DNA from: Macrostomum lignano
Lineage: Eukaryota
Assembly (NCBI GenBank): GCA_002269645.1
Contig: NIVC01002941.1
Span: forward strand, 1 to 24,082
DNA length: 24,082 nt
Direction: 5' to 3'
Below, piece by piece: positions 130 to 24,082 of the stretch (positions within the stretch are counted from its first letter, which is position 1; each line of letters starts with the position of its first letter). Under the pieces are notes generated by a model that did no database searches, was not told the origin of the DNA, and saw only the letters and a program-made list of their open reading frames with translations. The translations under genes were made by a program, and so were the position numbers.

Positions 130-159
130 GCGCTTCTGGTTGTGCATTGACCTTGTTGC

Positions 160-1958: not shown

Positions 1959-2008
1959 AAATTCCTGAATAAAAACACATTATAAGTAGTATTTTTATTC
2001 AGGAATTT
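1959..2008. other. Perfect 17-bp inverted repeat with 16-nt loop
   Basis: AAATTCCTGAATAAAAA (1959-1975) is the exact reverse complement of TTTTTATTCAGGAATTT (1992-2008). Confidence 0.9.
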
Positions 2009-2443
2009 TGCAGGCATAGAAGTGCAAGTGCAGCCAACCCAACATGTGGAACATTGCAGGATTCAACAGAACCCCTTGTTCGCTTTTACGAATAAAATCT
2101 CAGTCAAAATCTTTGGCCAAAAGAAGGAAATTATCTTGTGTCTTTTTGTGATTTCGCCTTGCAAGCCGAATCAATTAATGCGGCATTGGGCATTGGGGAG
2201 GAAGGAACCATGACGAAGAATTCACATGAATGATTTCGGAAATTGTGTTCAGGAATATGAAAATATGGTTTCTATTTTTAGGCTGGGCGTGGCTCGTTTT
2301 TAGGATGGCAAATTAGGAGACGTCTCAGGCTGTTTTACAATTCGATCCATTTTTATTAGGTTTTTATTGTGTGCCACGTGGACTCTGCCTGCAAATTTTG
2401 CTGTATGGCTGGTTAATAGATTTTGGGAGGTTTTAGGGCTCTA

Positions 2444-2500
2444 GCCTAGCAGAGCCGATCGGATTCACAACTGAAAGGTCGGGGTTCGATTCTCGACCCA
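2444..2500 (+). mobile_element. Truncated tRNA-like SINE head, same family as 4035-4326
   Basis: TGAAAGGTCGGGGTTCGATTCTCGACCCA (2472-2500) matches 4071-4100 except for one G in a run, and contains the pol III B-box GGTTCGATTC. Confidence 0.75.
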
Positions 2501-3032
2501 TTGAGTAGGTTCCAAGTGCATGAATATGTTGGATGAATAGCATAACTTGCTATTATTATATAAGAATACCAACATTATACTTTATTATTCATCCATGCTC
2601 TGTAAGCGTCGAATTTCATATGTCGGAAAATGAGAGCAGCTATATTTTGTGATTTAAGCATTCACCAATAAGGTATTTCATCCATATTTCAGCAAGTAAT
2701 ACACCTTTTACGTTCAATTTCGATCAGAGTCAAGTTCTGAAAAAGAAGATAGCGGAAATTCAATTCAAAACAGACAGAGCCGTTGCAATTCAAACATTTA
2801 CAGTAGGCTTTTTGTCTATGGCTAAAGGTAGTCATTTGTTAACTATTTAATCCCCGGCATGGCCCAGCCGACTTCATGGACAAAGAAACGTTTTGGGGGG
2901 TATTATTCATATTTTATACTTCTTCAGGTTATCAGTCTGTTTCTTTTACGAGTATAAAAATTCCTGATGCTGATATTTGTCTTAGTGCCAAAGCAAGTAT
3001 TTTGAGCTACAAACAACCTCAGCAAGATCAAG

Positions 3033-3530
3033 ATGAGCCCCAGAACTGTGAACCATATGCTAGGCTGTCGAACGAATGCCATTGGCTTTGTGATCGAAGC
3101 GCTCGACAGAGGTGAACACCCAAAGGACACTGCAAGGTTGCTGAATTTAAAAGAAAAGATGGTTTACAGCATCCATCAGCGCGTTGAAATCACTGCTGGG
3201 CGAGATCGCCTACGAAAGGGTGGCAAATTGCAGAAATGCAGCAGAAGTTAAAGGAACAGTCCATTTGGTTATCAGATTTTGACTATGACCAGAGCTCTGG
3301 AAAAGCGACTGAAAACTGTTGGTACAGACAAGGACATTCCAGCGGTACGCAACAACCGCAGACTGTTGCGAGAAGGCAGGAATTGGCCGAATGGCTCACG
3401 AGTGTTTGGACCAAGTTGATGCTTGTTGGACCAAATTAAATGCCGCTGTGCAAGCCTTGCTACCATAGACAAAATTTATCTTGGATTAAATTCATGCGTG
3501 TAGGCCCAAATGAGTCACAATTGTACTTTC
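3033..3530 (+). pseudogene. Degenerate Tc1/mariner-like transposase remnant
   Basis: VIEALDRGEHPKDTARLLNLKEKMVYSIHQRVEITAGRDRLRKGGK resembles the Tc1 N-terminal HTH plus GRPR-like linker. ELAEWLTSVWTKL...NAAVQAL resembles Tc1 C-terminal helices. It is broken across frames and no DDE core is visible. Matched from memory, not by search. Confidence 0.5.
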
Positions 3531-3658
3531 TGTGATAAGAATTCTTGTACCTGTACGTCTTGACACAGTTCATGAGGCTTAACGTAAAAAAGTTGTTCAA
3601 ATCCGACGTAAATCCTATTCTAATCTACAAAAACGTCACAATTTCTCACACAATCCAG

Positions 3659-3993
3659 GTGAAAGTCTGGCTGCGAGACGAAGCAGACGTCAAGAGCATG
3701 CTCGCCGAGCTGAAGGTGCTCTTCCTGTACAACAGGCGAGTCACCTCGGTGACGATCTTCGTGCTGGACGGCCGCTCGGTCAGCCAAGTGGCATCGCATC
3801 TGGACACGGAGTTCGGTGACTGGCTTCAGCTGGCCTGCCCGCCAACTCAAGGAGCTACCTGACGATCCACCGCGTGCTGCCGGTGGATCAACGAGCCGCT
3901 GTCGTGTCAGCGGCGCTTCGGGCGTCAGAGGACGCTGAAGTCGAGCTGGCGATGCACCCGTCGCTGGACGGCTTCGACCTCAACCACCTGTGA
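3659..3993 (+). CDS. Probable terminal coding exon of an unidentified gene, with a 1-nt frameshift near 3832
   Basis: Acceptor ...caatccAG ends at 3658. The reading is VKVWLRDEADVKSMLAELKVLFLYNRRVTSVTIFVLDG...DWLQL. Coding-like codon bias then continues in another frame (GLPANSRSYLTIHRVLPVDQRAAVVSAALRASEDAEVELAMHPSLDGFDLNHL*) to TGA 3991-3993. Confidence 0.65.
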
Positions 3994-4034
3994 TGGACAG
4001 AATTGAGACACTGTTTCTCGGAAACTGTTGGAGG

Positions 4035-4326
4035 GTTGCAGCCTTGTGGCTAGAGAGTCGGGCTTGCGAGTGAAAGGTCGGGGGTTCGATTCTCGACCCA
4101 ACTCGGAACAATTTGTGTCCTTGAGCAAGACACTTAACTCTGCATTGCTTCAGTTCACCCAGCTGTAAAATGGGTGCCAGCATTAGCTGGAGTAATTAAT
4201 CCCAGTCCTTGGACTGAACAGCCGTACGCAGCCTTCAGATGTGTCCCCCGCAATAGCTGCGGCTGAGCTGTCGGTTGCACATCTGGTTATTAGGGCAGGT
4301 GTAATCAATTATTATTATTATTATTA
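4035..4326 (+). mobile_element. Apparently full-length tRNA-derived SINE with CORE-like central domain and (TTA)n tail
   Basis: A-box-like GTGGCTAGAG (4046-4055) and B-box GGTTCGATTC (4083-4092). The central TGTGTCCTTGAGCAAGACACTTAAC...CAGCTGTAAAATGGG resembles the MIR/CORE consensus. TTA tail at ~4309-4326. Confidence 0.85.
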
Positions 4327-4912
4327 GGAGGTTTAGCAATTTAGGATCTTTTTTAAAGTCCCAGACTCTCAGTAAAAAATTAACGTTCTTCGTTGAAAAA
4401 CTGATAGAAAGATTGAATGTGCATCAGGATGTCCTGTAAAAGTTACTTGTTTAAAAATTGTTTATGATTTTGTTTATGAGTACTTAATTTAAAGGCTGTT
4501 ATTAATGATTAATGATATTTTGGAAACTTAGGTAAAAAACTAATTTTTAGTTAGCTTAGATCATTTAGACACAAAGTCCGGCTGGCCCTTCAACAGTTTT
4601 CCAAAGAACAGTGCGCAAATTTCACGCCACTATTTGATCATATTTAAGTATCTGAGTGAACATTCTCAACTCACCCAAGGCTCTGTAATAAGCCAATAAG
4701 AATTATTTAATTATTTTATGTACTTTCCTATATCAGATGCATTGCTTAATTGAAGTTGCTGCAGCCTGCGGTTTGGTGACACAATGCTAACCATTGATTG
4801 TATCTTTCTTAATTGCTAATTTCATAAATAAATTAATAAGAGGCTAGGAGGTAGCTCGCTATTTTCATAATTTATTTTAATTGTCTTTTGTGTTGCCCTT
4901 TATATCTTCTCC

Positions 4913-5650
4913 TTTCATCTCCTCTGCCCGTCATCTCCTCTACCCTTCATCTCCCCCATCCTTCATCTCCCCCATCCTGCATCTCCTCAACTCTTCATCT
5001 CCCCCACCCTTCATCTCCCCCATCCTGCATCTCCTCAACTCTTCATCTCCTCCACTCTTCATCTCGTCAGACTCTTCATCTCCTCCGCCCTTCATCTCCT
5101 CAACCCTTCATCTCCTCAACCCTTCATCTCCCCCATCCTTCATCTCCTCAACTCTTCATCTCCCCCACCCTTCATCTCCCCCATCCTTCATCTCCTCAAC
5201 TCTTCATCTCCTCCACTCTTCATCTCGTCAGACTCTTCATCTCCTCCGCCCTTCATCTCCTCAACCCTTCATCTCCTCAACCCTTCATCTCCCCCATCCT
5301 TCATCTCCTCAACTCTTCATCTCCCCCACCCTTCATCTCCCCCATCCTGCATCTCCTCAACTCTTCATCTCCTCCACTCTTCATCTCGTCAGACTCTTCA
5401 TCTCCTCCGCCCTTCATCTCCTCAACCCTTCATCTCCTCAACCCTTCATCTCCACTACCCTTCATCTCCTCAACCCTTCATCTCCACTGCCCTTCATCTT
5501 CTCAACCTTTCATCTTCTCAACCTTTCATCTTCTCAACCCTTCATCTTTTCAACCCTTCATCTCCTCAACCCTTCATCTCCACTACCCTTCATCTCCTCC
5601 ACTCTTCATCTGGTCAGATTCTTCATCCCCTCCGCCCTTCATCTCCTCCC
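4913..5650. repeat. Degenerate ~16-bp C/T-rich minisatellite (core CTTCATCTCC) with a 161-bp higher-order period
   Basis: The CTTCATCTCC core recurs about every 16 nt. The marker ATCTCGTCAGAC occurs at 5061, 5222 and 5383. Confidence 0.93.
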
Positions 5651-5879
5651 CTCCTCTCTTCCACATTACATATCCTTCAATCTGCGTCTGTTCTGCCCTT
5701 TATCTTTATTTTTCTATTTCTACAGCTGAACTGAGCAGGGGAGCTTGGATTAGAGACTTTCCCAGCTCGTGAAATTTCAATATTTTAAAGTTAAAGTCTG
5801 TGACAGCGTTTCCAAGATTCATGCTCGCCTCAGTGTCGTGAAGATATCAAAATTCATATTCATAAAATCCTTGGGCCTC

Positions 5880-6423
5880 ACAGCCGTGGAAGCGTGGGGA
5901 CGCAAGATGGGTGGATCCCCAGATTCCCTGCATTTCGGACAGGTGGCCGAGCGACACGGCAGGGAAGTTGCGAGTCTCCAGGTGCGAGCCTGAACTGGGC
6001 GGGGCCGGGCGAGGCTGCCTGCTCTTGAGCTGCTGTGGGCAACAGCAGGTCTTCTCCTGAGTCGGGGAATACGAAGAGACGAGAGAGGGTGTTCTCCCCT
6101 CCCCGACTCCGCTTCCCTGTGATGCTCAAAGCCTCATCCCGTGCTCAGCTGCAGCTACTCATCTACTCCTGACTTCCCGCCCCTAAGTGATCCCCGTCTC
6201 CCGCTCCCCCCGTTACACACCTGTCAGTCGGGTCTCAGCTCTCGGGCGGCTAAAATCCTCATTTCTTTACTCCTGAGCGAATCAGGACGCGCAGTTCTCG
6301 GAAACAACCAAAAATTCCAATCCTCCGCTGTGCTCAATGCAGCGGCAGTAAAAGCCGTGCCGTCTCAACCGACTGCTGCAATCTGCCTCGCATCACTCCC
6401 TCCCTGTCTCGCCGCTGATCAGA
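5880..6423 (+). promoter_or_regulatory. GC/CpG-rich upstream region (putative promoter or 5' UTR) of the 523-aa gene
   Basis: Local rise in GC and CpG relative to the AT-rich flanks, with a GC-box GGGCGGGG at 5997-6004. It lies directly upstream of ATG 6424. No TSS evidence. Confidence 0.35.
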
Positions 6424-6933
6424 ATGGGCCAAAGCAACTCTGTTGAGCGGGTGTTCACTCCGCCGAAGTTCACCAGCTCCTACGGCCACTGCGCCCTGCA
6501 CGTGTCGCATGAAATCGGCGATCTGTGCGGCAGCAGCGGCGGCACTGGCGACTGGGACGTCGACACCGGCAGCAAAGCTGGCGGCCTTGACGTTCTCTAC
6601 GGCGACTCGGAGCTCTCCGGCCTGCTGATGAAAGCTTTGCTGGCTCATGTTGGCGGCAGCTCCAAGGACCTTCAGCCGTACGCCCGGCTCGTCAAGGACG
6701 GCTGGCAGAGAGTCTCGTGCGCCCGCCTGCTGCGCCCGATGCCCACGGTGGAGCCGGTGGAGCCGCTGTGCAGGAAGCGCTACAGCTTCCTCTGCGACTT
6801 CCTAGCCAGCCTCTACGCCAACGGCTACCGCGTGCTGGCCGGCATCAAACTGCTGCGGAAGCACGATGGACTCAACTTGAGCTCCATCCTGCTGGAGCAG
6901 GTGCGGAAAGAGGAAGGCCAGGACGCCGAGGAG
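6424..6933 (+). CDS. Exon 1 of 4 (170 codons) of a 523-aa uncharacterised four-repeat protein
   Basis: ATG at 6424 gives MGQSNS. The frame is open and GC3-rich up to ...QDAEE, followed by donor GTGAGC at 6934 (phase 0). Confidence 0.88.
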
Positions 6934-6947
6934 GTGAGCGAGTCAAT

Positions 6948-6969
6948 TTATTATTATTATTATTATTAT

Positions 6970-7007
<38 letters not shown>

Positions 7008-7008
7008 G

Positions 7009-7050
<42 letters not shown>
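6948..7050. repeat. Compound microsatellite (TTA)n(CTA)n in intron 1
   Basis: Directly visible trinucleotide runs filling most of the 132-nt intron. Confidence 0.97.
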
Positions 7051-7052
<2 letters not shown>

Positions 7053-7065
7053 TCAAATTTTCCAG

Positions 7066-7371
7066 ATGAAATTTTCCGTCATAGATTTGCACGGAGAAGA
7101 CACACTAATGGTCTGGTTCGCCCCTCGCGACCTACAAAATGACATAACTGAGATTTTCGATCGGTACTGCAATCATGAGTACAGGAGAATCGAAATCAGT
7201 GAGACGTGTCTCCACCTGGTTGCCAAGGACTCGATCTGGTTCACTGGCAAGGGCAGCAGCATGGAGATCAAGGACATGGGTCGCTACATTCTGCTTCACC
7301 TGATCGAGTCGGCCATCGGTCGTGGATTCTGGCCGGAAGTGGCGCTGAACCTTGGACAGAACGACACTCTG
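7066..7371 (+). CDS. Exon 2 of 4 (102 codons)
   Basis: Acceptor ttttccAG ends at 7065. The reading is [14 protein letters not shown]...LGQNDTL, followed by donor GTTAGA at 7372 (phase 0/0). Confidence 0.85.
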
Positions 7372-7440
7372 GTTAGAACAAGCATAATACTGCTAGTACC
7401 ATGAATGCATAACCAACTATTTAAATTTGTTATTTCTATT

Positions 7441-7820
7441 AGTTGCTTGGTTGGTTGGTTGGTTGTTTCGTTAGTTGGTTGGTTGTTTGATTGGTTGTTT
7501 GGTTGGTTGGTTGGTTGGTTGGTTGGTTGGTTGGTTGGTTGGTTGGTTGGTTGGTTGGTTGGTTGGTTGGTTGGTTGGTTGGTTGGTTGGTTGGTTGGTT
7601 GGTTGGTTGGTTGGTTGGCTGCTTGGTTGCTTGGTTGCTTGGTTGCTTGGTTGCTTGGTTGCTTGGTTGCTTGGTTGCTTGGTTGCTTGGTTGCTTGGTT
7701 GCTTGGTTGCTTGGTTGCTTGGTTGCTTGGTTGCTTGGTTGCTTGGTTGCTTGGTTGCTTGGTTGCTTGGTTGCTTGGTTAGTTGTTTTGCTGGTTGGTT
7801 CGTTTTGGTTGGCTGGTTGT
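7441..7820. repeat. Compound microsatellite (TTGG)n switching to (TTGCTTGG)n in intron 2
   Basis: Pure TTGG run at ~7500-7618, then the 8-mer GCTTGGTT at ~7619-7780, with degenerate edges. Confidence 0.97.
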
Positions 7821-7863
7821 TTTATTTTCTCTATACAAAATACCGATTAAAACTCCAATCCAG

Positions 7864-8166
7864 GTGATGAGGAAAGCCCCAGAAAAGTGTCTCGAGCTCA
7901 CGGACACGCGCCTGCTGATGGTGTCTTTGGAGCGGAAAAATTGTATTCGACTGGTTTCGTCCGACAATTCCTCTGTCAAGTGGTGCCTCGACGTGACTCA
8001 GAAGTTTTGGAACCAGACGGAGTTCGGCGGGGTCAAGTCAGTGTCCAACTACAGCCACTCGGTTCTCGTTGAGCTCAACGTCCAGATCTGGCGGGTGCAC
8101 TACTTTGATGAGAGAAGCATGTACGGCAAGTTGTATCTGGTGCGACTGTTCACCGACGCGCTGCAG
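7864..8166 (+). CDS. Exon 3 of 4 (101 codons)
   Basis: Acceptor caatccAG ends at 7863. The reading is VMRKAPEK...LFTDALQ, followed by donor GTGAGA at 8167 (phase 0/0). Confidence 0.88.
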
Positions 8167-9204
8167 GTGAGACACTCTGCTGTTGTGTCGATGCTGTATC
8201 GGTCTATAGGCTGCTGAAATTGTCTGTGAAGAAGCAGTGAAGATTCGCATCACAGGCACTTGGATCAGAGAAGAATCTTGGGCTTAATATTAGAATTCAG
8301 TGTTTAATAACCTTCATAGACTACTCAGGATGTATAAGAAGTAAAATGGATCAGAAATTTCGCTAATTAGAAAAATTCCGTTCGTTGTTTCCATTTTCCT
8401 AAAGAATTATTTTTCTATATGTCTTCACGTACTTCGTAAACCTGTTGACAGCGTTTGATTCGATTTTCAAAGGACTTTTCCGAGCAAGCAAATGTGAAAT
8501 TGTTTCCTAGATTTGATCAGTGCTCTTAGTCTTGCAGAAAACATTATTTATTGAGATGATTTAGAATGGCTCTGTGAAACTATAAGAGATAAAGGGAATA
8601 ACAAAACATACAATTAATCAACTCTGCACAGAAGCAAGGGCCTGGGATGTACGACGTATTTTTTTAATGAGCTTTGAAACCTACGATTTGGTCGCATAAT
8701 AAGACTGCCCACAGAAGAGCCTGAAGGCACTCTATTGCAGTGTCTGCAATAATGTGGCTCACTGATATTACAAAAGAACTTCAAGCATGTCCGTCCACTG
8801 AGGCCAGAGCTCTGGCCTATCAGAGCGCACAAACCGATGGTCCCCCGGTTTCCACTTTCATTGTTCCTCCATGTCAATACGCTTGTAAACGAGACACCTA
8901 GTGCTTTTTGCCCGCTGGCTAACTAAAAAAAGGGAATGACTACCATATGCATGCATAGCTCGTAGCTAGTAGCAACTTAACGGTTAGCGCGCCTGACTAT
9001 CGTGAGTTCTTGTGAGTCCGTGAGTTTCGAGAATGGTCGACATTAATTTGGAGCGTCCGCACAGAAATGGGCCTTCGTTGGGGTCGTGTGGCCACAAGTC
9101 CCAAATGAATGCAAGGGTTGCCGTAGCGCGAGAGTCAGACGTGTTTACTGAGAACTGCGGAGCGGACCCGGTGCCAGCAACTCAAGCGAACTTCCCCCTT
9201 TCAG

Positions 9205-9657
9205 GACGGCTGGCGACCCATCCTGCGATTCGACAAGAACGACCACGCCAAGTCCAGCATCGTGTTCGGTCGCGCCCAGCCCGCCAAGTGCGCCGTGTTC
9301 TGCCTGGCCCTCATGGGCAAAGGCATGCTGCGCGCCTGCAAAGCGCCGCTCGACGCTCGCTCGGCGATTCGTTCGGTCATCTTCGACACCTGGTACAAGG
9401 AAGTGTACACCGAGTTTACCAAGGACCTGTGGTGGGGTATGAACCTTGGGGGGACGCCCTGGTCTCGTTCGGTTGTTCCGTCGGTCGCTCTGCTACTCGC
9501 CATCGTTGAGGCGCTCCGCAACCTGGGCTGGCAGCTCATGCTGACGGTACGCACCAGCGGGCTGTATCCCAAGGGCGAGTACAAAGACCAGAAAGGCGAG
9601 ACCAGACGGTTCAATCACTGCGATGTGGACACCATGTTCTTCTACAAGCCGGTATGA
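9205..9657 (+). CDS. Exon 4 of 4 (150 codons plus stop)
   Basis: Polypyrimidine acceptor cttccccctttcAG ends at 9204. The reading is DGWRPILRFDKND...DVDTMFFYKPV*, in frame with the listed ORF 9262-9657. TGA at 9655-9657. Confidence 0.88.
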   Translation, partial: DGWRPILRFDKNDHAKSSIVFGRAQPAKCAVFCLALMGKGMLRACKAPLDARSAIRSVIFDTWYKEVYTEFTKDLWWGMNLGGTPWSRSVVPSVALLLAIVEALRNLGWQLMLTVRTSGLYPKGEYKDQKGETRRFNHCDVDTMFFYKPV

Positions 9658-10258
9658 GTCGGCGGAACTGGAGCCACCCTGTTCGGTTAACACTTAAAGA
9701 GGGTTTTTAAACACTTTTCAATTTCGTTGTCTCGATTCTGTCTTATTATTGTCAATATTTTCTCATATTTACCTTTGCCTATCATTCGTTTATCTCATTT
9801 ATGCATCTGTCCATCTCATTCATGATTCTCTGTCTGATCCGAGAACCTCCCTACCTCACCCCTCCATTCAGACGTTGAGAAGCTCATACTTGTGAGCACA
9901 TCTGAACCATTCTGAGCCGTTCGCTGACATTATCAAAAACTTTTTTAATCAGATATGTCTGCCTGCCCTATAGCTTAAAATTGTGTACCTGTGTGCCAGT
10001 TTCTTTATCGGAGACAATTTGAGTTTTACAGAACACATTATACAAAATAATCTCATGATTTAACCGGAATAGCTTTTTTGTAGCATCAGAAGTCATTGTA
10101 GTCTTGTGAAAACTTTGTTCGGAATAATATACCTGGCTTGACTGCAAACTCCATTCTGGAACCCAGTTCCTGTCTGTCCAAAAATATGCAGCCATTTATT
10201 GTTTTAGTTTGTGATAGTTTGTTTCTGTCTGGTTGTTTCTCGTTTTCCGTATGCATGC

Positions 10259-10260
<2 letters not shown>

Positions 10261-10337
<77 letters not shown>
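10261..10337. repeat. (CAGA)n microsatellite
   Basis: About 19 perfect tetranucleotide units. Confidence 0.97.
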
Positions 10338-10364
10338 TACCGCTGTCTGTGTGTTTAGCGGGAC

Positions 10365-11617
10365 CAGAGTTTGGTTAATGCATTAGGTGGACCACCTAGT
10401 TTCCTTATAAAACCGGTGTCTTTTGTCTCTACACGAAAAGTTAGCGTGGGTTGTCTTTCAGTTTAGCCTGCAGATTAGCCATCTCGTGGAAACTGCATGT
10501 CACTTTCAACTGGGATAGCTGGACCAGCCCGGACCTGTTTTAGGTGGACCTTCAAAAAGACACCGTTTAGGTGGACCATCATTTATTTAGCAGAGTACTG
10601 GGATTATTATCGACCCAGTACTGTTAAGCACGAGAAACAACACTAAAAGTCACGTGACAGAAGTCCCAAATACACAATATGTAATAAAGTGAAAATAATG
10701 CATTCAGTTCTAGTTTGCTCCGGACTCAAGAACCATCATCCCCATTAAAAACAAATGAATCAAATGCAACTAATTTTTAGGCCGAGAAAAATAGTTACAA
10801 GTGCAAATTAACGGCCAAGCAAAAGTTTAAATAGCAAAAAGTCATATTTGTTTTTCACTAGAATAATGATAAACCTAAAGAAACGCACTTAACGTCCCAA
10901 ATATGTGCCAAAAGGCAAGTAGATTGACGACGATATAATTATTAAATACATTTGCCTAATAAATTTCACGTATTACAATAAAAAAACTTTCCATTCAATT
11001 TTTGAAAAATGAAAAAAGTTTTACCGGACGGACGAGACATGTTACGACGGATAGCGGAATCATCTCACAGAAAGCCACAAGCTGTCGCAGTCAATATCAT
11101 CATAAACAAACTTTTGCGGTTGAGCACAAAAAAATCGTCTTCATTTTGCCGGAGTTGCTTGCGTCACTCGTCTGCATCAAAGCTGACTTGCCGTCTCCAG
11201 ACTGGGCCTGTCAAATTTGGCATTTATACGAGAATTCAGGATTGACAGTTTACAACTGATATTCTACTGAGACTTTGAAACAGACTGGCATATTGGTGTC
11301 AGTGCAGTCTGTAGGTTAGCTGGACCACCTAAACTTGAATTCCACCTCCTATCTGTGGGGCTCTTAAACAGACTTGATCAGTTGCGTCAGTGCAGTCTGT
11401 AGGTTAGCTGGACCACCTAAACTTGAATTCCACCCCATCTATGAGGCTCTAAAACAGACTGGCTCTGTGGCGTCAGTGCAGTCTGTAGGTTAGCTGGACC
11501 TCCTAAACTTGAATTCCACCCCATCTATGAGGCTCTAAAACAGACTGGCTCTGTGGCGTCAGTACAGTCTGTAGGTTAGCTGGACCAGTTCAATTAGAAT
11601 AGGATAAGCCAAATCTG
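10365..11617 (+). mobile_element. Putative degenerate or non-autonomous hAT-like DNA transposon
   Basis: Imperfect terminal match: CAGAGTTTGGTTAA (10365) versus the reverse complement of TAA(G/A)CCAAATCTG (11605-11617). Subterminal TAG(G/C)TGGACC motifs occur at both ends. A frameshifted peptide resembles the hAT C-terminal dimerisation region. No TSD found. Confidence 0.4.
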
Positions 11618-14600
11618 AACACTTTTGCAGCAAGCTCATCACAGTAGATTCAATCTCGTCCTATGACTGAACTGCGATGAGGCAACACGTCTGTCCACCG
11701 GACTGACCAGCGTCTCAGGTGCCTCAGCCGACTTCTTAGAAGTGTCCAGACGTGAGGTGTCAGCCTATAGTCGACTAATGGCTCTTGGCCTTTAAAGTCT
11801 TGGTCGATATCTTGCTGGAGTTGCTTGCGTCACTCGTCTGCATCAAAGCTGACTTGCCGTCTCCAGACTGGGCCTGTCAAATTTGGCATTTATACGAGAA
11901 TTCAGGATTGACAGTTTACAACTGATATTCTACTGAGACTTTGAAACAGACTGGCATATTGGTGTCAGTACAGTCTGTAGGTTAGCTGGACCACCTAAAC
12001 TTGAATTCCACCTCCTATCTGTGAGGCTCTTCAACAGACTGGCTCAGTTGCGTCAGTGCAGTCTGTAGGTTAGCTGGACCAGCTAAACTTGAATTCCACC
12101 TCCTATTGGTGAGGCTCTAAAACAGACTGGCTCAGTTGCGTCAGTGCAGTCTGTAGGTTAGCTGGACCAGCTAAACTTGAATTCCACCTCCTATCTGTGA
12201 GGCTCTAAAACAGACTGGATCAGTTGCGTCAGTACAGTCTGTAGGTTAGCTGGACCACCTAAACTTGAATTCCACCCCATCTGTGAGGCTCTAAAACAGA
12301 CTGGCTCTGTGGCGTCAGTACAGTCTGTAGGTTAGCTGGACCAGTTCAATTAGAATAGGATAAGCCAAATCTGAACACTTTGCAGCAAGCTCACCACAGT
12401 AGATTCAATCTCGTCCTATGACTGAACTGCGATGAGGCAACACGTCTGTCCACCGGACTGACCAGCGTCTCAGGTGCCTCAGCTGACTTCTTAGAAGTGT
12501 CCAGACGTGAGGTGTCAGCCTATAGTCGACTTAATGGCTCTTGGTCTTAAAGTCTTGGTCGATATCTTGCTGGAGTTGCTTGCGTCACTCGTCTGCATCA
12601 AAGCTGACTTGCCGTCTCCAGACTGGGCCTGTCAAATTTGGCATTTATACGAGAATTAAGGATTGACAGTTTACAACTGATATTCTACTGAGACTTTGAA
12701 ACAGACTGGCATATTGGTGTCAGTACAGTCTGTAGGTTAGCTGGACCACCTAAACTAGAATTCCACCTCCTATCTGTGAGGCTCTTCAACAGACTGGCTC
12801 AGTTGCGTCAGTGCAGTCTGTAGGTTAGCTGGACCAGCTAAACTTGAATTCCACCTCCTATCTGTGAGGCTCTTAAACAGACTTGATCAGTTGCGTCAGT
12901 ACAGTCTGTAGGTTAGCTGGACCACCTAAACTTGAATTCCACCCCATCTGTGAGGCTCTAAAACAGACTGGCTCTGTGGCGTCAGTACAGTCTGTAGGTT
13001 AGCTGGACCAGTTCAATTAGAATAGGATAAACCAAATCTGAACACTTTTGCAGCAAGCTCACCACAGTAGATTCAATCTCGTCCTATGACTGAACTGCGA
13101 TGAGGCAACACGTCTGTCCACCGGACTGACCAGCGTCTCAGGTGCCTAAGCCGACTTCTTAGAAGTTTCCAGACGTGAGGTGTCAGCCTATAGTCGACTA
13201 ATCGCTCTTGGCCTTTAAAGTCTTGGTCGATATCTTGCTGGAGTTGCTTGCGTCACTCGTCTGCATCAAAGCTGACTTGCCGTCTCCAGACTGGGCCTGT
13301 CAAATTTGGCATTTATACGAGAATTCAGGATTGACAGTTTACAACTGATATTCTACTGAGACTTTGAAACAGACTGGCATATTGGTGTCAGTGCAGTCTG
13401 TAGGTTAGCTGGACCACCTAAACTTGAATTCCACCTCCTATCTGTGAGGCTCTTAAACAGACTGGCTCTGTGGCGTCAGTGCAGTCTGTAGGTTAGCTGG
13501 ACCTCCTAAACTTGAATTCCACCCCATCTATGAGGCTCTAAAACAGACTGGCTCTGTGGCGTCAGTACAGTCTGTAGGTTAGCTGGACCAGTTCAATTAG
13601 AATAGGATAAGCCAAATCTGAACACTTTTGCAGCAAGCTCACCACAGTAGATTCAATCTCGTCCTATGACTGAACTGCGATGAGGCAACACGTCTGTCCA
13701 CCGGACTGACCAGCGTCTCAGGTGCCTCAGCCGACTTCTTAGAAGTGTCCAGACGTGAGGTGTCAGCCTATAGTCGACTAATGGCTCTTGGCCTTTAAAG
13801 TCTTGGTCGATATCTTGCTGGAGTTGCTTGCGTCACTCGTCTGCATCAAAGCTGACTTGCCGTCTCCAGACTGGGCCTGTCAAATTTGGCATTTATACGA
13901 GAATTCAGGATTGACAGTTTACAACTGATATTCTACTGAGACTTTGAAACAGACTGGCATATTGGTGTCAGTACAGTCTGTAGGTTAGCTGGACCACCTA
14001 AACTTGAATTCCACCTCCTATCTGTGAGGCTCTTCAACAGACTGGCTCAGTTGCGTCAGTGCAGTCTGTAGGTTAGCTGGACCAGCTAAACTTGAATTCC
14101 ACCTCCTATTGGTGAGGCTCTAAAACAGACTGGCTCAGTTGCGTCAGTGCAGTCTGTAGGTTAGCTGGACCACCTAAACTTGAATTCCACCTCCTATCTG
14201 TGAGGCTCTAAAACAGACTGGATCAGTTGCGTCAGTACAGTCTGTAGGTTAGCTGGACCACCTAAACTTGAATTCCACCCCATCTGTGAGGCTCTAAAAC
14301 AGACTGGCTCTGTGGCGTCAGTACAGTCTGTAGGTTAGCTGGACCAGTTCAATTAGAATAGGATAAGCCAAATCTGAACACTTTGCAGCAAGCTCACCAC
14401 AGTAGATTCAATCTCGTCCTATGACTGAACTGCGATGAGGCAACACGTCTGTCCACCGGACTGACCAGCGTCTCAGGTGCCTCAGCTGACTTCTTAGAAG
14501 TGTCCAGACGTGAGGTGTCAGCCTATAGTCGACTTAATGGCTCTTGGTCTTAAAGTCTTGGTCGATATCTTGCTGGAGTTGCTTGCGTCACTCGTCTGCA

Positions 14601-17600
14601 TCAAAGCTGACTTGCCGTCTCCAGACTGGGCCTGTCAAATTTGGCATTTATACGAGAATTCAGGATTGACAGTTTACAACTGATATTCTACTGAGACTTT
14701 GAAACAGACTGGCATATTGGTGTCAGTACAGTCTGTAGGTTAGCTGGACCACCTAAACTTGAATTCCACCTCCTATCTGTGAGGCTCTTCAACAGACTGG
14801 CTCAGTTGCGTCAGTGCAGTCTGTAGGTTAGCTGGACCAGCTAAACTTGAATTCCACCTCCTATTGGTGAGGCTCTAAAACAGACTGGCTCAGTTGCGTC
14901 AGTGCAGTCTGTAGGTTAGCTGGACCACCTAAACTTGAATTCCACCTCCTATCTGTGAGGCTCTTCAACAGACTGGATCAGTTGCGTCAGTACAGTCTGT
15001 AGGTTAGCTGGACCACCTAAACTTGAATTCCACCCCATCTGTGAGGCTCTAAAACAGACTGGCTCTGTGGCGTCAGTACAGTCTGTAGGTTAGCTGGACC
15101 AGTTCAATTAGAATAGGATAAGCCAAATCTGAACACTTTGCAGCAAGCTCACCACAGTAGATTCAATCTCGTCCTATGACTGAACTGCGATGAGGCAACA
15201 CGTCTGTCCACCGGACTGACCAGCGTCTCAGGTGCCTCAGCTGACTTCTTAGAAGTGTCCAGACGTGAGGTGTCAGCCTATAGTCGACTTAATGGCTCTT
15301 GGTCTTAAAGTCTTGGTCGATATCTTGCTGGAGTTGCTTGCGTCACTCGTCTGCATCAAAGCTGACTTGCCGTCTCCAGACTGGGCCTGTCAAATTTGGC
15401 ATTTATACGAGAATTCAGGATTGACAGTTTACAACTGATATTCTACTGAGACTTTGAAAAAGACTGGCATATTGGTGTCAGTGCAGTCTGTAGGTTAGCT
15501 GGACCACCTAAACTTGAATTCCACCTCCTATCTGTGAGGCTCTTAAACAGACTGGCTCTGTGGCGTCAGTGCAGTCTGTAGGTTAGCTGGACCTCCTAAA
15601 CTTGAATTCCACCCCATCTATGAGGCTCTAAAACAGACTGGCTCTGTGGCGTCAGTACAGTCTGTAGGTTAGCTGGACCACCTAAACTTGAATTCCACCT
15701 CCTATCTGTGGGGCTCTTAAACAGACTTGATCAGTTGCGTCAGTGCAGTCTGTAGGTTAGCTGGACCACCTAAACTTGAATTCCACCCCATCTATGAGGC
15801 TCTAAAACAGACTGGCTCTGTGGCGTCAGTGCAGTCTGTAGGTTAGCTGGACCTCCTAAACTTGAATTCCACCCCATCTATGAGGCTCTAAAACAGACTG
15901 GCTCTGTGGCGTCAGTACAGTCTGTAGGTTAGCTGGACCAGTTCAATTAGAATAGGATAAGCCAAATCTGAACACTTTTGCAGCAAGCTCATCACAGTAG
16001 ATTCAATCTCGTCCTATGACTGAACTGCGATGAGGCAACACGTCTGTCCACCGGACTGACCAGCGTCTCAGGTGCCTCAGCCGACTTCTTAGAAGTGTCC
16101 AGACGTGAGGTGTCAGCCTATAGTCGACTAATGGCTCTTGGCCTTTAAAGTCTTGGTCGATATCTTGCTGGAGTTGCTTGCGTCACTCGTCTGCATCAAA
16201 GCTGACTTGCCGTCTCCAGACTGGGCCTGTCAAATTTGGCATTTATACGAGAATTCAGGATTGACAGTTTACAACTGATATTCTACTGAGACTTTGAAAC
16301 AGACTGGCATATTGGTGTCAGTACAGTCTGTAGGTTAGCTGGACCACCTAAACTTGAATTCCACCTCCTATCTGTGAGGCTCTTCAACAGACTGGCTCAG
16401 TTGCGTCAGTGCAGTCTGTAGGTTAGCTGGACCAGCTAAACTTGAATTCCACCTCCTATTGGTGAGGCTCTAAAACAGACTGGCTCAGTTGCGTCAGTGC
16501 AGTCTGTAGGTTAGCTGGACCAGCTAAACTTGAATTCCACCTCCTATCTGTGAGGCTCTAAAACAGACTGGATCAGTTGCGTCAGTACAGTCTGTAGGTT
16601 AGCTGGACCACCTAAACTTGAATTCCACCCCATCTGTGAGGCTCTAAAACAGACTGGCTCTGTGGCGTCAGTACAGTCTGTAGGTTAGCTGGACCAGTTC
16701 AATTAGAATAGGATAAGCCAAATCTGAACACTTTGCAGCAAGCTCACCACAGTAGATTCAATCTCGTCCTATGACTGAACTGCGATGAGGCAACACGTCT
16801 GTCCACCGGACTGACCAGCGTCTCAGGTGCCTCAGCTGACTTCTTAGAAGTGTCCAGACGTGAGGTGTCAGCCTATAGTCGACTTAATGGCTCTTGGTCT
16901 TAAAGTCTTGGTCGATATCTTGCTGGAGTTGCTTGCGTCACTCGTCTGCATCAAAGCTGACTTGCCGTCTCCAGACTGGGCCTGTCAAATTTGGCATTTA
17001 TACGAGAATTAAGGATTGACAGTTTACAACTGATATTCTACTGAGACTTTGAAACAGACTGGCATATTGGTGTCAGTACAGTCTGTAGGTTAGCTGGACC
17101 ACCTAAACTTGAATTCCACCTCCTATCTGTGAGGCTCTTCAACAGACTGGCTCTGTGGCGTCAGTGCAGTCTGTAGGTTAGCTGGACCTCCTAAACTTGA
17201 ATTCCACCCCATCTATGAGGCTCTAAAACAGACTGGCTCTGTGGCGTCAGTACAGTCTGTAGGTTAGCTGGACCAGTTCAATTAGAATAGGATAAGCCAA
17301 ATCTGAACACTTTTGCAGCAAGCTCACCACAGTAGATTCAATCTCGTCCTATGACTGAACTGCGATGAGGCAACACGTCTGTCCACCGGACTGACCAGCG
17401 TCTCAGGTGCCTCAGCCGACTTCTTAGAAGTGTCCAGACGTGAGGTGTCAGCCTATAGTCGACTAATGGCTCTTGGCCTTTAAAGTCTTGGTCGATATCT
17501 TGCTGGAGTTGCTTGCGTCACTCGTCTGCATCAAAGCTGACTTGCCGTCTCCAGACTGGGCCTGTCAAATTTGGCATTTATACGAGAATTCAGGATTGAC

Positions 17601-20600
17601 AGTTTACAACTGATATTCTACTGAGACTTTGAAACAGACTGGCATATTGGTGTCAGTACAGTCTGTAGGTTAGCTGGACCACCTAAACTTGAATTCCACC
17701 TCCTATCTGTGAGGCTCTTCAACAGACTGGCTCAGTTGCGTCAGTGCAGTCTGTAGGTTAGCTGGACCAGCTAAACTTGAATTCCACCTCCTATCTGTGA
17801 GGCTCTTAAACAGACTTGATCAGTTGCGTCAGTACAGTCTGTAGGTTAGCTGGACCACCTAAACTTGAATTCCAGCCCATCTGTGAGGCTCTAAAACAGA
17901 CTGGCTCTGTGGCGTCAGTACAGTCTGTAGGTTAGCTGGACCAGTTCAATTAGAATAGGATAAACCAAATCTGAACACTTTTGCAGCAAGCTCACCACAG
18001 TAGATTCAATCTCGTCCTATGACTGAACTGCGATGAGGCAACACGTCTGTCCACCGGACTGACCAGCGTCTCAGGTGCCTAAGCCGACTTCTTAGAAGTT
18101 TCCAGACGTGAGGTGTCAGCCTATAGTCGACTAATCGCTCTTGGCCTTTAAAGTCTTGGTCGATATCTTGCTGGAGTTGCTTGCGTCACTCGTCTGCATC
18201 AAAGCTGACTTGCCGTCTCCAGACTGGGCCTGTCAAATTTGGCATTTATACGAGAATTCAGGATTGACAGTTTACAACTGATATTCTACTGAGACTTTGA
18301 AACAGACTGGCATATTGGTGTCAGTGCAGTCTGTAGGTTAGCTGGACCACCTAAACTTGAATTCCACCTCCTATCTGTGAGGCTCTTAAACAGACTGGCT
18401 CTGTGGCGTCAGTGCAGTCTGTAGGTTAGCTGGACCTCCTAAACTTGAATTCCACCCCATCTATGAGGCTCTAAAACAGACTGGCTCTGTGGCGTCAGTA
18501 CAGTCTGTAGGTTAGCTGGACCAGTTCAATTAGAATAGGATAAGCCAAATCTGAACACTTTTGCAGCAAGCTCACCACAGTAGATTCAATCTCGTCCTAT
18601 GACTGAACTGCGATGAGGCAACACGTCTGTCCACCGGACTGACCAGCGTCTCAGGTGCCTCAGCCGACTTCTTAGAAGTGTCCAGACGTGAGGTGTCAGC
18701 CTATAGTCGACTAATGGCTCTTGGCCTTTAAAGTCTTGGTCGATATCTTGCTGGAGTTGCTTGCGTCACTCGTCTGCATCAAAGCTGACTTGCCGTCTCC
18801 AGACTGGGCCTGTCAAATTTGGCATTTATACGAGAATTCAGGATTGACAGTTTACAACTGATATTCTACTGAGACTTTGAAACAGACTGGCATATTGGTG
18901 TCAGTACAGTCTGTAGGTTAGCTGGACCACCTAAACTTGAATTCCACCTCCTATCTGTGAGGCTCTTCAACAGACTGGCTCAGTTGCGTCAGTGCAGTCT
19001 GTAGGTTAGCTGGACCAGCTAAACTTGAATTCCACCTCCTATTGGTGAGGCTCTAAAACAGACTGGCTCAGTTGCGTCAGTGCAGTCTGTAGGTTAGCTG
19101 GACCAGCTAAACTTGAATTCCACCTCCTATCTGTGAGGCTCTAAAACAGACTGGATCAGTTGCGTCAGTACAGTCTGTAGGTTAGCTGGACCACCTAAAC
19201 TTGAATTCCACCCCATCTGTGAGGCTCTAAAACAGACTGGCTCTGTGGCGTCAGTACAGTCTGTAGGTTAGCTGGACCAGTTCAATTAGAATAGGATAAG
19301 CCAAATCTGAACACTTTGCAGCAAGCTCACCACAGTAGATTCAATCTCGTCCTATGACTGAACTGCGATGAGGCAACACGTCTGTCCACCGGACTGACCA
19401 GCGTCTCAGGTGCCTCAGCTGACTTCTTAGAAGTGTCCAGACGTGAGGTGTCAGCCTATAGTCGACTTAATGGCTCTTGGTCTTAAAGTCTTGGTCGATA
19501 TCTTGCTGGAGTTGCTTGCGTCACTCGTCTGCATCAAAGCTGACTTGCCGTCTCCAGACTGGGCCTGTCAAATTTGGCATTTATACGAGAATTCAGGATT
19601 GACAGTTTACAACTGATATTCTACTGAGACTTTGAAACAGACTGGCATATTGGTGTCAGTACAGTCTGTAGGTTAGCTGGACCACCTAAACTTGAATTCC
19701 ACCTCCTATCTGTGAGGCTCTTCAACAGACTGGCTCAGTTGCGTCAGTGCAGTCTGTAGGTTAGCTGGACCAGCTAAACTTGAATTCCACCTCCTATTGG
19801 TGAGGCTCTAAAACAGACTGGCTCAGTTGCGTCAGTGCAGTCTGTAGGTTAGCTGGACCACCTAAACTTGAATTCCACCTCCTATCTGTGAGGCTCTAAA
19901 ACAGACTGGATCAGTTGCGTCAGTACAGTCTGTAGGTTAGCTGGACCACCTAAACTTGAATTCCACCCCATCTGTGAGGCTCTAAAACAGACTGGCTCTG
20001 TGGCGTCAGTACAGTCTGTAGGTTAGCTGGACCAGTTCAATTAGAATAGGATAAGCCAAATCTGAACACTTTGCAGCAAGCTCACCACAGTAGATTCAAT
20101 CTCGTCCTATGACTGAACTGCGATGAGGCAACACGTCTGTCCACCGGACTGACCAGCGTCTCAGGTGCCTCAGCTGACTTCTTAGAAGTGTCCAGACGTG
20201 AGGTGTCAGCCTATAGTCGACTTAATGGCTCTTGGTCTTAAAGTCTTGGTCGATATCTTGCTGGAGTTGCTTGCGTCACTCGTCTGCATCAAAGCTGACT
20301 TGCCGTCTCCAGACTGGGCCTGTCAAATTTGGCATTTATACGAGAATTCAGGATTGACAGTTTACAACTGATATTCTACTGAGACTTTGAAACAGACTGG
20401 CATATTGGTGTCAGTGCAGTCTGTAGGTTAGCTGGACCACCTAAACTTGAATTCCACCTCCTATCTGTGAGGCTCTTAAACAGACTGGCTCTGTGGCGTC
20501 AGTGCAGTCTGTAGGTTAGCTGGACCTCCTAAACTTGAATTCCACCCCATCTATGAGGCTCTAAAACAGACTGGCTCTGTGGCGTCAGTACAGTCTGTAG

Positions 20601-23600
20601 GTTAGCTGGACCAGTTCAATTAGAATAGGATAAGCCAAATCTGAACACTTTTGCAGCAAGCTCACCACAGTAGATTCAATCTCGTCCTATGACTGAACTG
20701 CGATGAGGCAACACGTCTGTCCACCGGACTGACCAGCGTCTCAGGTGCCTCAGCTGACTTCTTAGAAGTGTCCAGACGTGAGGTGTCAGCCTATAGTCGA
20801 CTTAATGGCTCTTGGTCTTAAAGTCTTGGTCGATATCTTGCTGGAGTTGCTTGCGTCACTCGTCTGCATCAAAGCTGACTTGCCGTCTCCAGACTGGGCC
20901 TGTCAAATTTGGCATTTATACGAGAATTCAGGATTGACAGTTTACAACTGATATTCTACTGAGACTTTGAAACAGACTGGCATATTGGTGTCAGTACAGT
21001 CTGTAGGTTAGCTGGACCACCTAAACTTGAATTCCACCTCCTATCTGTGAGGCTCTTCAACAGACTGGCTCAGTTGCGTCAGTGCAGTCTGTAGGTTAGC
21101 TGGACCAGCTAAACTTGAATTCCACCTCCTATTGGTGAGGCTCTAAAACAGACTGGCTCAGTTGCGTCAGTGCAGTCTGTAGGTTAGCTGGACCACCTAA
21201 ACTTGAATTCCACCTCCTATCTGTGAGGCTCTAAAACAGACTGGATCAGTTGCGTCAGTACAGTCTGTAGGTTAGCTGGACCACCTAAACTTGAATTCCA
21301 CCCCATCTGTGAGGCTCTAAAACAGACTGGCTCTGTGGCGTCAGTACAGTCTGTAGGTTAGCTGGACCAGTTCAATTAGAATAGGATAAGCCAAATCTGA
21401 ACACTTTTGCAGCAAGCTCACCACAGTAGATTCAATCTCGTCCTATGACTGAACTGCGATGAGGCAACACGTCTGTCCACCGGACTGACCAGCGTCTCAG
21501 GTGCCTCAGCTGACTTCTTAGAAGTGTCCAGACGTGAGGTGTCAGCCTATAGTCGACTTAATGGCTCTTGGTCTTAAAGTCTTGGTCGATATCTTGCTGG
21601 AGTTGCTTGCGTCACTCGTCTGCATCAAAGCTGACTTGCCGTCTCCAGACTGGGCCTGTCAAATTTGGCATTTATACGAGAATTAAGGATTGACAGTTTA
21701 CAACTGATATTCTACTGAGACTTTGAAACAGACTGGCATATTGGTGTCAGTACAGTCTGTAGGTTAGCTGGACCACCTAAACTTGAATTCCACCTCCTAT
21801 CTGTGAGGCTCTTCAACAGACTGGCTCAGTTGCGTCAGTGCAGTCTGTAGGTTAGCTGGACCAGCTAAACTTGAATTCCACCTCCTATCTGTGAGGCTCT
21901 TAAACAGACTTGATCAATTGCGTCAGTACAGTCTGTAGGTTAGCTGGACCACCTAAACTTGAATTCCACCCCATCTGTGAGGCTCTAAAACAGACTGGCT
22001 CTGTGGCGTCAGTACAGTCTGTAGGTTAGCTGGACCAGTTCAATTAGAATAGGATAAGCCAAATCTGAACACTTTTGCAGCAAGCTCACCACAGTAGATT
22101 CAATCTCGTCCTATGACTGAACTGCGATGAGGCAACACGTCTGTCCACCGGACTGACCAGCGTCTCAGGTGCCTCAGCGACTTCTTAGAAGTGTCCAGAC
22201 GTGAGGTGTCAGCCTATAGTCGACTTAATGGCTCTTGGTCTTAAAGTCTTGGTCGATATCTTGCTGGAGTTGCTTGCGTCACTCGTCTGCATCAAAGCTG
22301 ACTTGCCGTCTCCAGACTGGGCCTGTCAAATTTGGCATTTATACGAGAATTCAGGATTGACAGTTTACAACTGATATTCTACTGAGACTTTGAAACAGAC
22401 TGGCATATTGGTGTCAGTACAGTCTGTAGGTTAGCTGGACCACCTAAACTTGAATTCCACCTCCTATCTGTGAGGCTCTTAAACAGACTGGCTCTGTGGC
22501 GTCAGTGCAGTCTGTAGGTTAGCTGGACCTCCTAAAACTTGAATTCCACCCCATCTATGAGGCTCTAAAACAGACTGGCTCTGTGGCGTCAGTACAGTCT
22601 GTAGGTTAGCTGGACCAGTTCAATTAGAATAGGATAAGCCAAATCTGAACACTTTTGCAGCAAGCTCACCACAGTAGATTCAATCTCGTCCTATGACTGA
22701 ACTGCGATGAGGCAACACGTCTGTCCACCGGACTGACCAGCGTCTCAGGTGCCTCAGCCGACTTCTTAGAAGTGTCCAGACGTGAGGTGTCAGCCTATAG
22801 TCGACTAATGGCTCTTGGCCTTTAAAGTCTTGGTCGATATCTTGCTGGAGTTGCTTGCGTCACTCGTCTGCATCAAAGCTGACTTGCCGTCTCCAGACTG
22901 GGCCTGTCAAATTTGGCATTTATACGAGAATTCAGGATTGACAGTTTACAACTGATATTCTACTGAGACTTTGAAACAGACTGGCATATTGGTGTCAGTA
23001 CAGTCTGTAGGTTAGCTGGACCACCTAAACTTGAATTCCACCTCCTATCTGTGAGGCTCTTCAACAGACTGGCTCAGTTGCGTCAGTGCAGTCTGTAGGT
23101 TAGCTGGACCAGCTAAACTTGAATTCCACCTCCTATTGGTGAGGCTCTAAAACAGACTGGCTCAGTTGCGTCAGTGCAGTCTGTAGGTTAGCTGGACCAC
23201 CTAAACTTGAATTCCACCTCCTATCTGTGAGGCTCTTCAACAGACTGGATCAGTTGCGTCAGTACAGTCTGTAGGTTAGCTGGACCACCTAAACTTGAAT
23301 TCCGCCCCATCTGTGAGGCTCTAAAACAGACTGGCTCTGTGGCGTCAGTACAGTCTGTAGGTTAGCTGGACCAGTTCAATTAGAATAGGATAAGCCAAAT
23401 CTGAACACTTTGCAGCAAGCTCACCACAGTAGATTCAATCTCGTCCTATGACTGAACTGCGATGAGGCAACACGTCTGTTCCACCGGACTGACCAGCGTC
23501 TCAGGTGCCTCAGCTGACTTCTTAGAAGTGTCCAGACGTGAGGTGTCAGCCTATAGTCGACTTAATGGCTCTTGGTCTTAAAGTCTTGGTCGATATCTTG

Positions 23601-24082
23601 CTGGAGTTGCTTGCGTCACTCGTCTGCATCAAAGCTGACTTGCCGTCTCCAGACTGGGCCTGTCAAATTTGGCATTTATACGAGAATTAAGGATTGACAG
23701 TTTACAACTGATATTCTACTGAGACTTTGAAACAGACTGGCATATTGGTGTCAGTACAGTCTGTAGGTTTAGCTGGACCACCTAAACTTGAATTCCACCT
23801 CCTATCTGTGAGGCTCTTCAACAGACTTGGCTCAGTTGCGTCAGTGCAGTCTGTAGGTTAGCTGGACAGCCTAAACTTGAATTCCACCTCCTATCTGTGA
23901 GGCTCTTAAAACAGACTTGATCAATTGCGTCAGTACAGTCTGTAGGTTAGCTGGACCACCTAAACTTGAATTCCACCCATCTGTGAGGCTCTAAACAGAC
24001 TGGCTGTGCGTCAGTACAAGTCTGTAGGTTAGCTGGACCAGTTCAATTAGAATAGGATAAGCCAATCTGAACACTTTTGCAG
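11146..24082. repeat. Nested tandem satellite: ~406-bp constant segment plus variable numbers of 86-88-bp subrepeats; runs off the window end
   Basis: The marker GGAGTTGCTTGCGTCAC occurs at 11151, 11817, 12572, 13240, 13820, 14575, 15330, 16170, 16925, 17505, 18173, 18753, 19508, 20263, 20843, 21599, 22266, 22847 and 23603. Copies are near-identical. Confidence 0.98.

Follow-up and report, generated by a model that had tools for sequence, protein, structure and literature searches.

Organization of the tandem array

The DNA described here is a stretch of 24,082 nucleotides from Macrostomum lignano, the forward strand of contig NIVC01002941.1 in assembly GCA_002269645.1, and is referred to below as the window. 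Its left 11 kb is eukaryotic nuclear DNA with a CpG observed/expected ratio of about 0.8, several micro- and minisatellites and a four-exon gene. From position 11146 to the last base at 24082, the plus strand carries a nested tandem array of 18 complete units and one partial unit, which was delimited by the spacing of an anchor sequence, by the copies of a short core and by inner 86/88 bp arrays that Tandem Repeats Finder reports with 87–92% matches. The array begins 1.5 kb past the stop codon of the gene and extends past the end of the window, with at least 12.9 kb of it lying within.

Each unit combines a constant part of 377 bp with 3–6 copies of an 86/88 bp subrepeat and is built in three parts, namely a left constant segment of 152 bp, the subrepeat block and a right constant segment of 225 bp. 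The last subrepeat of each block is shortened to a 29-nt core, and degenerate subrepeat sequence is found both at the end of the left segment and at the start of the right one. In unit 1, the left constant segment occupies positions 11146–11297 (plus strand), and the junction alignment and the sequence itself identify its last ~34 nt as a degenerate subrepeat tail (CTACTGAGACTTTGAAACAGACTGGCATATTGGT). The subrepeat block of this unit (11298–11586, plus strand) contains four cores with periods of 88, 86 and 86 bp, the last copy being the 29-nt core. The right constant segment (11587–11811, plus strand) holds the single SalI (11770) and EcoRV (11806) sites of the unit. For both enzymes there are 18 sites in the sequence, one per unit and spaced like the units, and an EcoRI site is present in every subrepeat, so that mostly 88 bp EcoRI fragments are predicted, along with others of 105 bp and of about 387 or 491 bp.

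A 28-nt anchor sequence within the constant part is found at 19 places, the first at 11151 and the last at 23603. The successive spacings are 666, 755, 668, 580, 755, 755, 840, 755, 580, 668, 580, 755, 755, 580, 756, 667, 581 and 756 bp, and units of about 580, 667, 755 and 840 bp contain 3, 4, 5 and 6 cores, respectively. The exact core sequence, GTCAGT[AG]CAGTCTGTAGGTTAGCTGGACC, is present in 78 copies in the array. When up to three mismatches are allowed, the 22-nt inner core has 80 matches, all of them on the plus strand and within the array, while none were obtained in 100 shuffles. An additional copy of the core, the 81st, lies in the last unit and contains an indel. A first-pass annotation of this DNA had listed 18 unit lengths, all of which are identical to the anchor spacings, and its description of 3, 4, 5 or 6 cores around a constant segment agrees with the core counts for each length class. 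Its estimate of about 80 motif copies compares with the 81 counted here, all on the plus strand, and its expectation that SalI and EcoRV cut once per unit is confirmed by the 18 sites of each at unit spacing.

The left edge of the array is sharp at 11146 (±5), where the annotation had also placed its start. Upstream of a TTGC sequence the flank is unrelated to the array, and downstream of it the first unit is the same as the other units. The junction itself (11146–11150, plus strand) was defined by aligning the flank and the first unit with the internal junctions. With a slash marking the boundary, the flank reads CATTTTGC/CGGAG, and every junction between units reads ATCTTGC/TGGAG. The flank thus shares a microhomology of only four bases, TTGC, with the monomer end.

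Several other identities for the array were considered and rejected. A coding repeat does not fit, because the unit contains no open reading frame (ORF) longer than 50 amino acids and the lengths of the unit and the subrepeat are not multiples of three. An array of structured or small-RNA genes, such as 5S, spliced leader, small nuclear RNA (snRNA) or transfer RNA (tRNA) genes, was also rejected. Rfam searches of two units at E ≤ 5 returned only chance matches of 17 bits, ARAGORN found no tRNA, and the whole window gave no Rfam match at gathering thresholds. Exact scans of metagenome, prokaryotic-genome and viral collections for the array pattern returned no matches.

The quality of the sequence is uneven along the array. 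Variants present in one unit only are marked by runs of private 21-mers, of which four real ones fall within 11150–21800, compared with 11 in the final 2.2 kb. The concentration of private variants at 21897–24082 (plus strand), seen in the 21-mer runs and in the sequence, consists mostly of single-base indels in short homopolymers and suggests low read support. The unit lengths that are off by one (756, 667, 581 and 756 bp) belong to units 15–18, in the distal part of the array. The last ~2 kb is probably a poorly polished contig end, and the true array is probably longer than the part seen. The last units should accordingly be interpreted with caution. The contig itself probably terminates within repeats that the assembly did not resolve.

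Palindromic elements of the subrepeat

The annotation had described the core as a palindromic motif. The 29-nt core is not itself a palindrome, but it contains a single small palindrome together with the left half of each of two larger ones. The small palindrome, TACAG-T-CTGTA, is held by the core and is present in 45 copies. One larger element is the dyad TTAGCTGG-A-CCAGCTAA, whose left half sits in the core. This dyad is perfect in 14 copies, and another 39 contain a single mismatch. The subrepeat also holds the inverted repeat ACAGACTG-N17-CAGTCTGT, found in 72 copies, in which ACAGACTG lies 17 nt upstream of CAGTCTGT. Among the 59 full subrepeats compared, variation is limited to about 13 positions. 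The 22-nt inner core is invariant across all 59, and so are long stretches outside it. Because the invariance reaches well beyond the core, the core alone displays no clear extra constraint.

Subrepeat variants and block duplications

Sequence identity within the array is hierarchical. Subrepeats inside a five-copy unit share a mean identity of 93.3%, whereas identity reaches 99.5% between subrepeats at corresponding positions of different units. This difference indicates that the inner repeat predates the amplification of the unit. Whole units of the same length class are 99.4–99.7% identical, which supports the earlier suggestion that the amplification was recent, and the constant segments are 97.1–100% identical.

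When each distinct subrepeat sequence is given a letter, every unit can be written as a string. Among the five-copy units, units 2, 8 and 12 read EFGHD, units 5, 13 and 15 read EFLHD, unit 6 reads EFMHD and unit 18 reads EFMTD. The four-copy units are unit 1 (ABCD), unit 3 (IJHD), unit 10 (EJPD) and unit 16 (EQHD), and the three-copy units are units 4, 11 and 14 (KCD), unit 9 (OCD) and unit 17 (RSD). Only unit 7 has six copies (KCNBCD). The variants hold fixed positions in these strings, E being first, H penultimate and D last. The variant of the constant segment mostly follows the length class, and every class can be told apart by diagnostic substitutions. Each length class therefore corresponds to monomer types defined by sequence.

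A number of the subrepeats are chimeric. K, O and R each join the head of an 88-type subrepeat to the tail of an 86-type, in N the head is that of the terminal copy D and the tail that of A, and J combines the head of F with the tail of A. The heads of K and O differ, so the three-copy state arose, or was converted, more than once. Unit 7 (15325–16164, plus strand), the sole 840 bp unit, is a recombinant according to the variant strings. It consists of K-C from a three-copy unit followed by N-B-C-D from a four-copy unit of the type found at the array edge, and the constant segment that follows it is identical to the one that follows unit 1. Such chimeric subrepeats are the products expected of out-of-register exchange between misaligned subrepeat blocks.

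Comparison of the array with itself by blastn detected duplications that span several units. A block at 12110–15680 recurs at 17042–20613, both on the plus strand, with 99.16% identity over 3.57 kb and an offset of 4932 bp. Positions 11366–15015 and 20390–24040 are likewise 98.5% identical over 3.66 kb, and offsets of about 2.0 kb, which correspond to a 5-4-3 triplet of units, are recurrent. With these multi-unit duplications and ~2.0 kb offsets, the array is repetitive at two to three levels. Unequal exchange out of register, acting at two or three levels, is the mechanism suggested by the chimeric subrepeats together with the multi-unit duplications of 3.6 kb.

The left flank

The unique flank contains a cluster of sites that are related to the core. 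Five copies of the core half-site TTAG[G/C]TGGACC start at 10355, 10383, 10515, 10540 and 10567 (10355–10577, plus strand), while the chance expectation with up to one mismatch is 0.9 per whole window. They span 223 bp with spacings of 28, 132, 25 and 27 bp and lie 570–790 bp ahead of the array. At up to two mismatches, six of the seven matches in the 11 kb flank fall inside this cluster. The perfect dyad TAGGTGG-A-CCACCTA includes the site at 10383, and GCTGG-A-CCAGC includes the one at 10515. The half-site in both of these dyads is the same one that forms a dyad in every subrepeat. When the alignment is anchored on each flank site, the surrounding sequence adds no further match to the monomer. 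The possibility that the flank is a decayed monomer was rejected, as local alignment of 10340–11146 with the monomer is no better than that of shuffles beyond a 16-nt site. By analogy, the cluster resembles the subterminal transposase-binding repeats of transposons, and clustered sites for a DNA-binding protein of the host would be an equally good explanation. If any part of the array is bound by protein, the invariant, dyad-bearing core that recurs as this flank cluster is the best candidate site.

Other small repeats surround the cluster. Directly ahead of it is the microsatellite (AGAC)19 at 10261–10337. The end of this microsatellite and the CTGTCTGT that follows form an inverted repeat at 10330–10352 that is reminiscent of the ACAGACTG...CAGTCTGT arms of the subrepeat. 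Just past the last flank site, at 10591–10619, is a hairpin, AGTACTGGG-N11-CCCAGTACT.

The four-exon gene, a GNPW-repeat gene, occupies 6424–9657 on the plus strand, with exons at ~6424–6960, 7066–7404, ~7860–8150 and 9205–9657. It was recognized by a coding-type GC periodicity and by its collinearity with a 518-amino-acid protein. Its product is an uncharacterized protein of about 500 amino acids with the N-terminal sequence MGQSNS and four internal repeats. These properties are common to its family, whose members are also about 500 amino acids long, begin with MG, contain four internal repeats, and are found in cnidarians, a flatworm, a nematode, a chytrid and a diplonemid. The nearest relative, with 80% identity in protein and 78% in DNA, lies on a genomic contig and is the only close relative found, by way of the last exon. 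A word-index search with two of the exons found no homologue, and neither exon was on record. The introns contain the microsatellite (TAC)27 at 6970–7051 and (GTTGGTTG)47 at 7442–7819.

Further features lie elsewhere in the flank. A 1.8 kb minisatellite, (AGTCTTATCTG) in 165 copies with 88% matches, occupies 160–1958 and is directly followed, at 1959–2008, by a 20-nt inverted repeat with a 10-nt spacer and 95% complementarity. A second two-level repeat, C/T-rich with a GC skew of -0.6, is found at 4914–5648, where a 16 bp minisatellite of ~46 copies has a higher-order period of 161 bp (4.3 copies, 92% matches). A block resembling a tRNA T-arm, GAAAGGTCGGGG(G)TTCGATTCTCGACCC, is present in two copies, at 2472–2500 and 4071–4100. 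The second copy heads a stretch of ~270 bp (4040–4310) that ends in (ATT)n and, by inspection only, looks like a tRNA-derived short interspersed element (SINE). Neither ARAGORN nor Rfam called a tRNA at these blocks, and a full-text literature search for the SINE-like block and the array core found nothing relevant. On the plus strand at 3033–3500 is a degenerate, stop-interrupted N-terminal fragment of a Tc1/mariner-type transposase with weak Pfam matches to HTH_28 and HTH_29. This fragment is the only transposase-like piece in the window, and it lies 8 kb from the array and is unrelated to it. A GC-rich patch at 3545–3990 (plus strand) contains two pieces of ORF that differ in frame and has a coding-like GC content at third codon positions (0.71). 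It could represent either an exon or a frameshifted transposon remnant, and no Pfam match was obtained.

Origin and evolution of the array

Based on this evidence, the array is most likely non-coding satellite DNA of the nested, or variable-length, tandem-repeat type in the nuclear genome, with a probability of roughly 0.7. Nested tandem repeats comprise two motifs in the arrangement x^s X with variable s, and here 377 bp of constant sequence alternates with 3–6 subrepeats. As in satellite DNA, the repeats are head-to-tail, in one orientation and non-coding, with 81 cores on the plus strand, no ORF longer than 50 amino acids in the unit, and no Rfam or tRNA match.

From the anatomy, identity hierarchy, chimeric subrepeats and block duplications observed here, we infer the following recombination mechanism and order of events. 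The 86/88 bp repeat would have originated within one sequence, its copies then diverging to about 93% identity. Whole monomers and blocks of 3–6 monomers would then have been amplified head-to-tail, by either unequal crossing-over or replication-template switching, with gene conversion holding the copies at least 99% alike. Out-of-register exchange between the subrepeats of misaligned monomers would shift the number of subrepeats by one, and the resulting 580, 667, 755 and 840 bp classes would have been copied by further block duplication. No function would be required for the array to exist. If the assembly is right, the locus is a cleanly resolved case of satellite monomer length classes arising and spreading. 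A few out-of-register exchanges of the inner repeat would have been followed by block duplication, and the recombinant products are still recognizable.

Some considerations weigh against the nested-satellite interpretation as formulated above. The view is limited to one edge and 13 kb of the array, and the order of units comes from a single assembly whose last 2 kb is seemingly poorly polished. Unequal exchange is deduced from its products rather than seen directly. A sharp boundary and high identity would also be expected if an extrachromosomal copy had been amplified by rolling circle and then reinserted. Lastly, a purely neutral satellite model does not explain the motif cluster in the flank.

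This cluster is also the one indirect clue in favour of the alternative that the satellite is derived from a transposon, as the first-pass annotation had proposed. In that case TTAG[G/C]TGGACC (11–16 nt) would be a subterminal transposase-binding repeat of an element whose end extends from ~10340 onward, and an inner tandem repeat with a palindromic pair of sites would have expanded into the array. The presence of five sites on the same strand in 223 bp of unique flank, and none elsewhere in the 11 kb, is consistent with this origin, as are the dyads formed from the same half-site by one flank copy and by the array copies, the sharp boundary of the array, and the precedents of Tetris (PMC4079207) and the Ogre-derived satellites (PMC7004042). 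However, none of the features that define a transposon, namely terminal inverted repeats, target-site duplication, a transposase and dispersed copies, is apparent for the array. Neither the units nor the ends of the array have terminal inverted repeats, and an inverted-repeat search of two units plus the flank returned internal dyads only. The unit contains no transposase remnant, just as it has no ORF longer than 50 amino acids, and the window contains no inverted-orientation cluster of the sites, no terminus and no dispersed copy of the unit (none in 1–11140, that is, in the 11 kb flank). Moreover, the similarity between flank and monomer stops at the site itself, and the whole monomer was amplified here, while only the subrepeat was amplified in Tetris. 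An origin from a transposon seems unlikely. A tentative scenario, against which the odds also lie, would have the satellite caught soon after its birth at its site of origin. A cluster of protein sites with the TTAG[G/C]TGG dyad, for a transposase or a host factor, would have existed downstream of the gene, and a nearby segment with a palindromic pair would have been duplicated via TTGC and amplified to more than 80 sites, with the site under constraint. The TTGC microhomology is the trace that a first tandem duplication in situ would leave. The site common to the unique flank and every subrepeat offers a concrete and testable connection of a young satellite with a cluster of binding sites that may be the end of a transposon.

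The remaining alternatives concern the context of the array and the reliability of its assembly. The sharing of an architecture, a constant segment and short repeats in varying number, all in one orientation, with the ribosomal DNA (rDNA) spacers on which nested tandem repeats were first formalized (PMC3273788) raises the possibility that the window lies at the edge of an rDNA cluster or that a spacer fragment escaped and was amplified. A contig that ends inside the array is compatible with an unassembled rDNA cluster. Even so, this explanation is highly improbable, given that the 24 kb window has no ribosomal RNA (rRNA) match, that a protein-coding gene (6424–9657) lies 1.5 kb upstream of the array, and that at least 18 super-repeats are far more than is typical of spacers. 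A subtelomeric, or telomere-associated, array would separate the telomere from the last genes and might be bound by a site-specific protein. This alternative is a matter of location and would be compatible with a nested satellite. The array does follow directly upon a gene-bearing region and reaches the apparent end of the contig, and TAS-R is a precedent for an array that is both transposon-derived and protein-bound (PMC9723646). Nevertheless, no telomeric repeat of a common type is present within the window, although the distal end of the array lies outside it, and assemblies break at internal satellites as well. This location is rather doubtful. It is also conceivable that the repeat family is real and that the order and number of units result from mis-joined or collapsed long reads. 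The steep rise of private 1-bp indels in the last 2.2 kb and the one-base departures of units 15–18 from their class lengths would be in keeping with such an artefact. From 11146 to 21800, however, there are only four private variants, the length classes show their respective diagnostic substitutions, and the multi-unit duplications are internally consistent, so this explanation is very unlikely.

Comparison with known repeat systems

The growth of a satellite from subterminal repeats has been described for the TIR-220 satellite of Tetris in Drosophila virilis (Dias et al., 2014; PMC4079207). As in the present array, the number of repeats is variable, with three versus four copies between Tetris alleles, and the variation was explained by unequal crossing-over. 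Homogeneous arrays of kilobase size were likewise proposed to come from repeats with transposase-binding sites. In Tetris, however, only the 220 bp inner repeat is amplified, demonstrably inside elements with terminal inverted repeats, whereas amplification in the present array involves the entire composite monomer, and no element can be seen. Satellites of the same transposon-derived origin include those of bivalves, in which miniature inverted-repeat transposable elements (MITEs) and Helentrons bear tandem repeats.

In Lathyrus sativus, satellites arose from short tandem arrays that expanded inside Ogre retrotransposons, and some of them have monomer length variants (Vondrak et al., 2020; PMC7004042). 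The long monomers of these satellites are similar to those described here. In contrast, they originate in the 3' untranslated region of a plant long terminal repeat (LTR) retrotransposon, at a fixed position with respect to gag-pol, and there is no comparable flank at this locus.

Complex units with internal subrepeats are typical of subtelomeric arrays. In Drosophila, the TAS-R array lies beside telomeric retrotransposons and is derived from an LTR, that of Invader4. It contains repeated sites for the protein Mod(mdg4)-N, and these have a dose-dependent effect (PMC9723646). Like TAS-R, the present array is a tandem array of complex units beside genes. It differs in that neither a telomere nor a parent element is seen.

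The rDNA spacer of Xenopus contains super-repeats of a "Bam island" and 60/81 bp repeats, that is, a segment with a spacer promoter and a variable number of short enhancer repeats. The succession of a constant segment and a variable number of short repeats, arranged head-to-tail, is the same in both systems. The Xenopus super-repeats are few per spacer and lie between rRNA genes, whereas the window contains no rRNA gene.

The closest formal description is that of nested tandem repeats, defined as x^s X with variable s and first described in the rDNA intergenic spacer of taro (Matroud et al., 2012; PMC3273788). In both cases there are two distinct motifs, x being short and in tandem and X interspersed, and they share one orientation, with s = 3–6 in the present array. 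Unlike the repeats of taro, those described here have no rDNA spacer context within the window. At 377 bp, their interspersed motif is long, and blocks of ~2.0–4.9 kb add a third, partial level of repetition. With these distinctions, the array fits a known class and is otherwise a typical complex satellite, shaped by unequal exchange like others.

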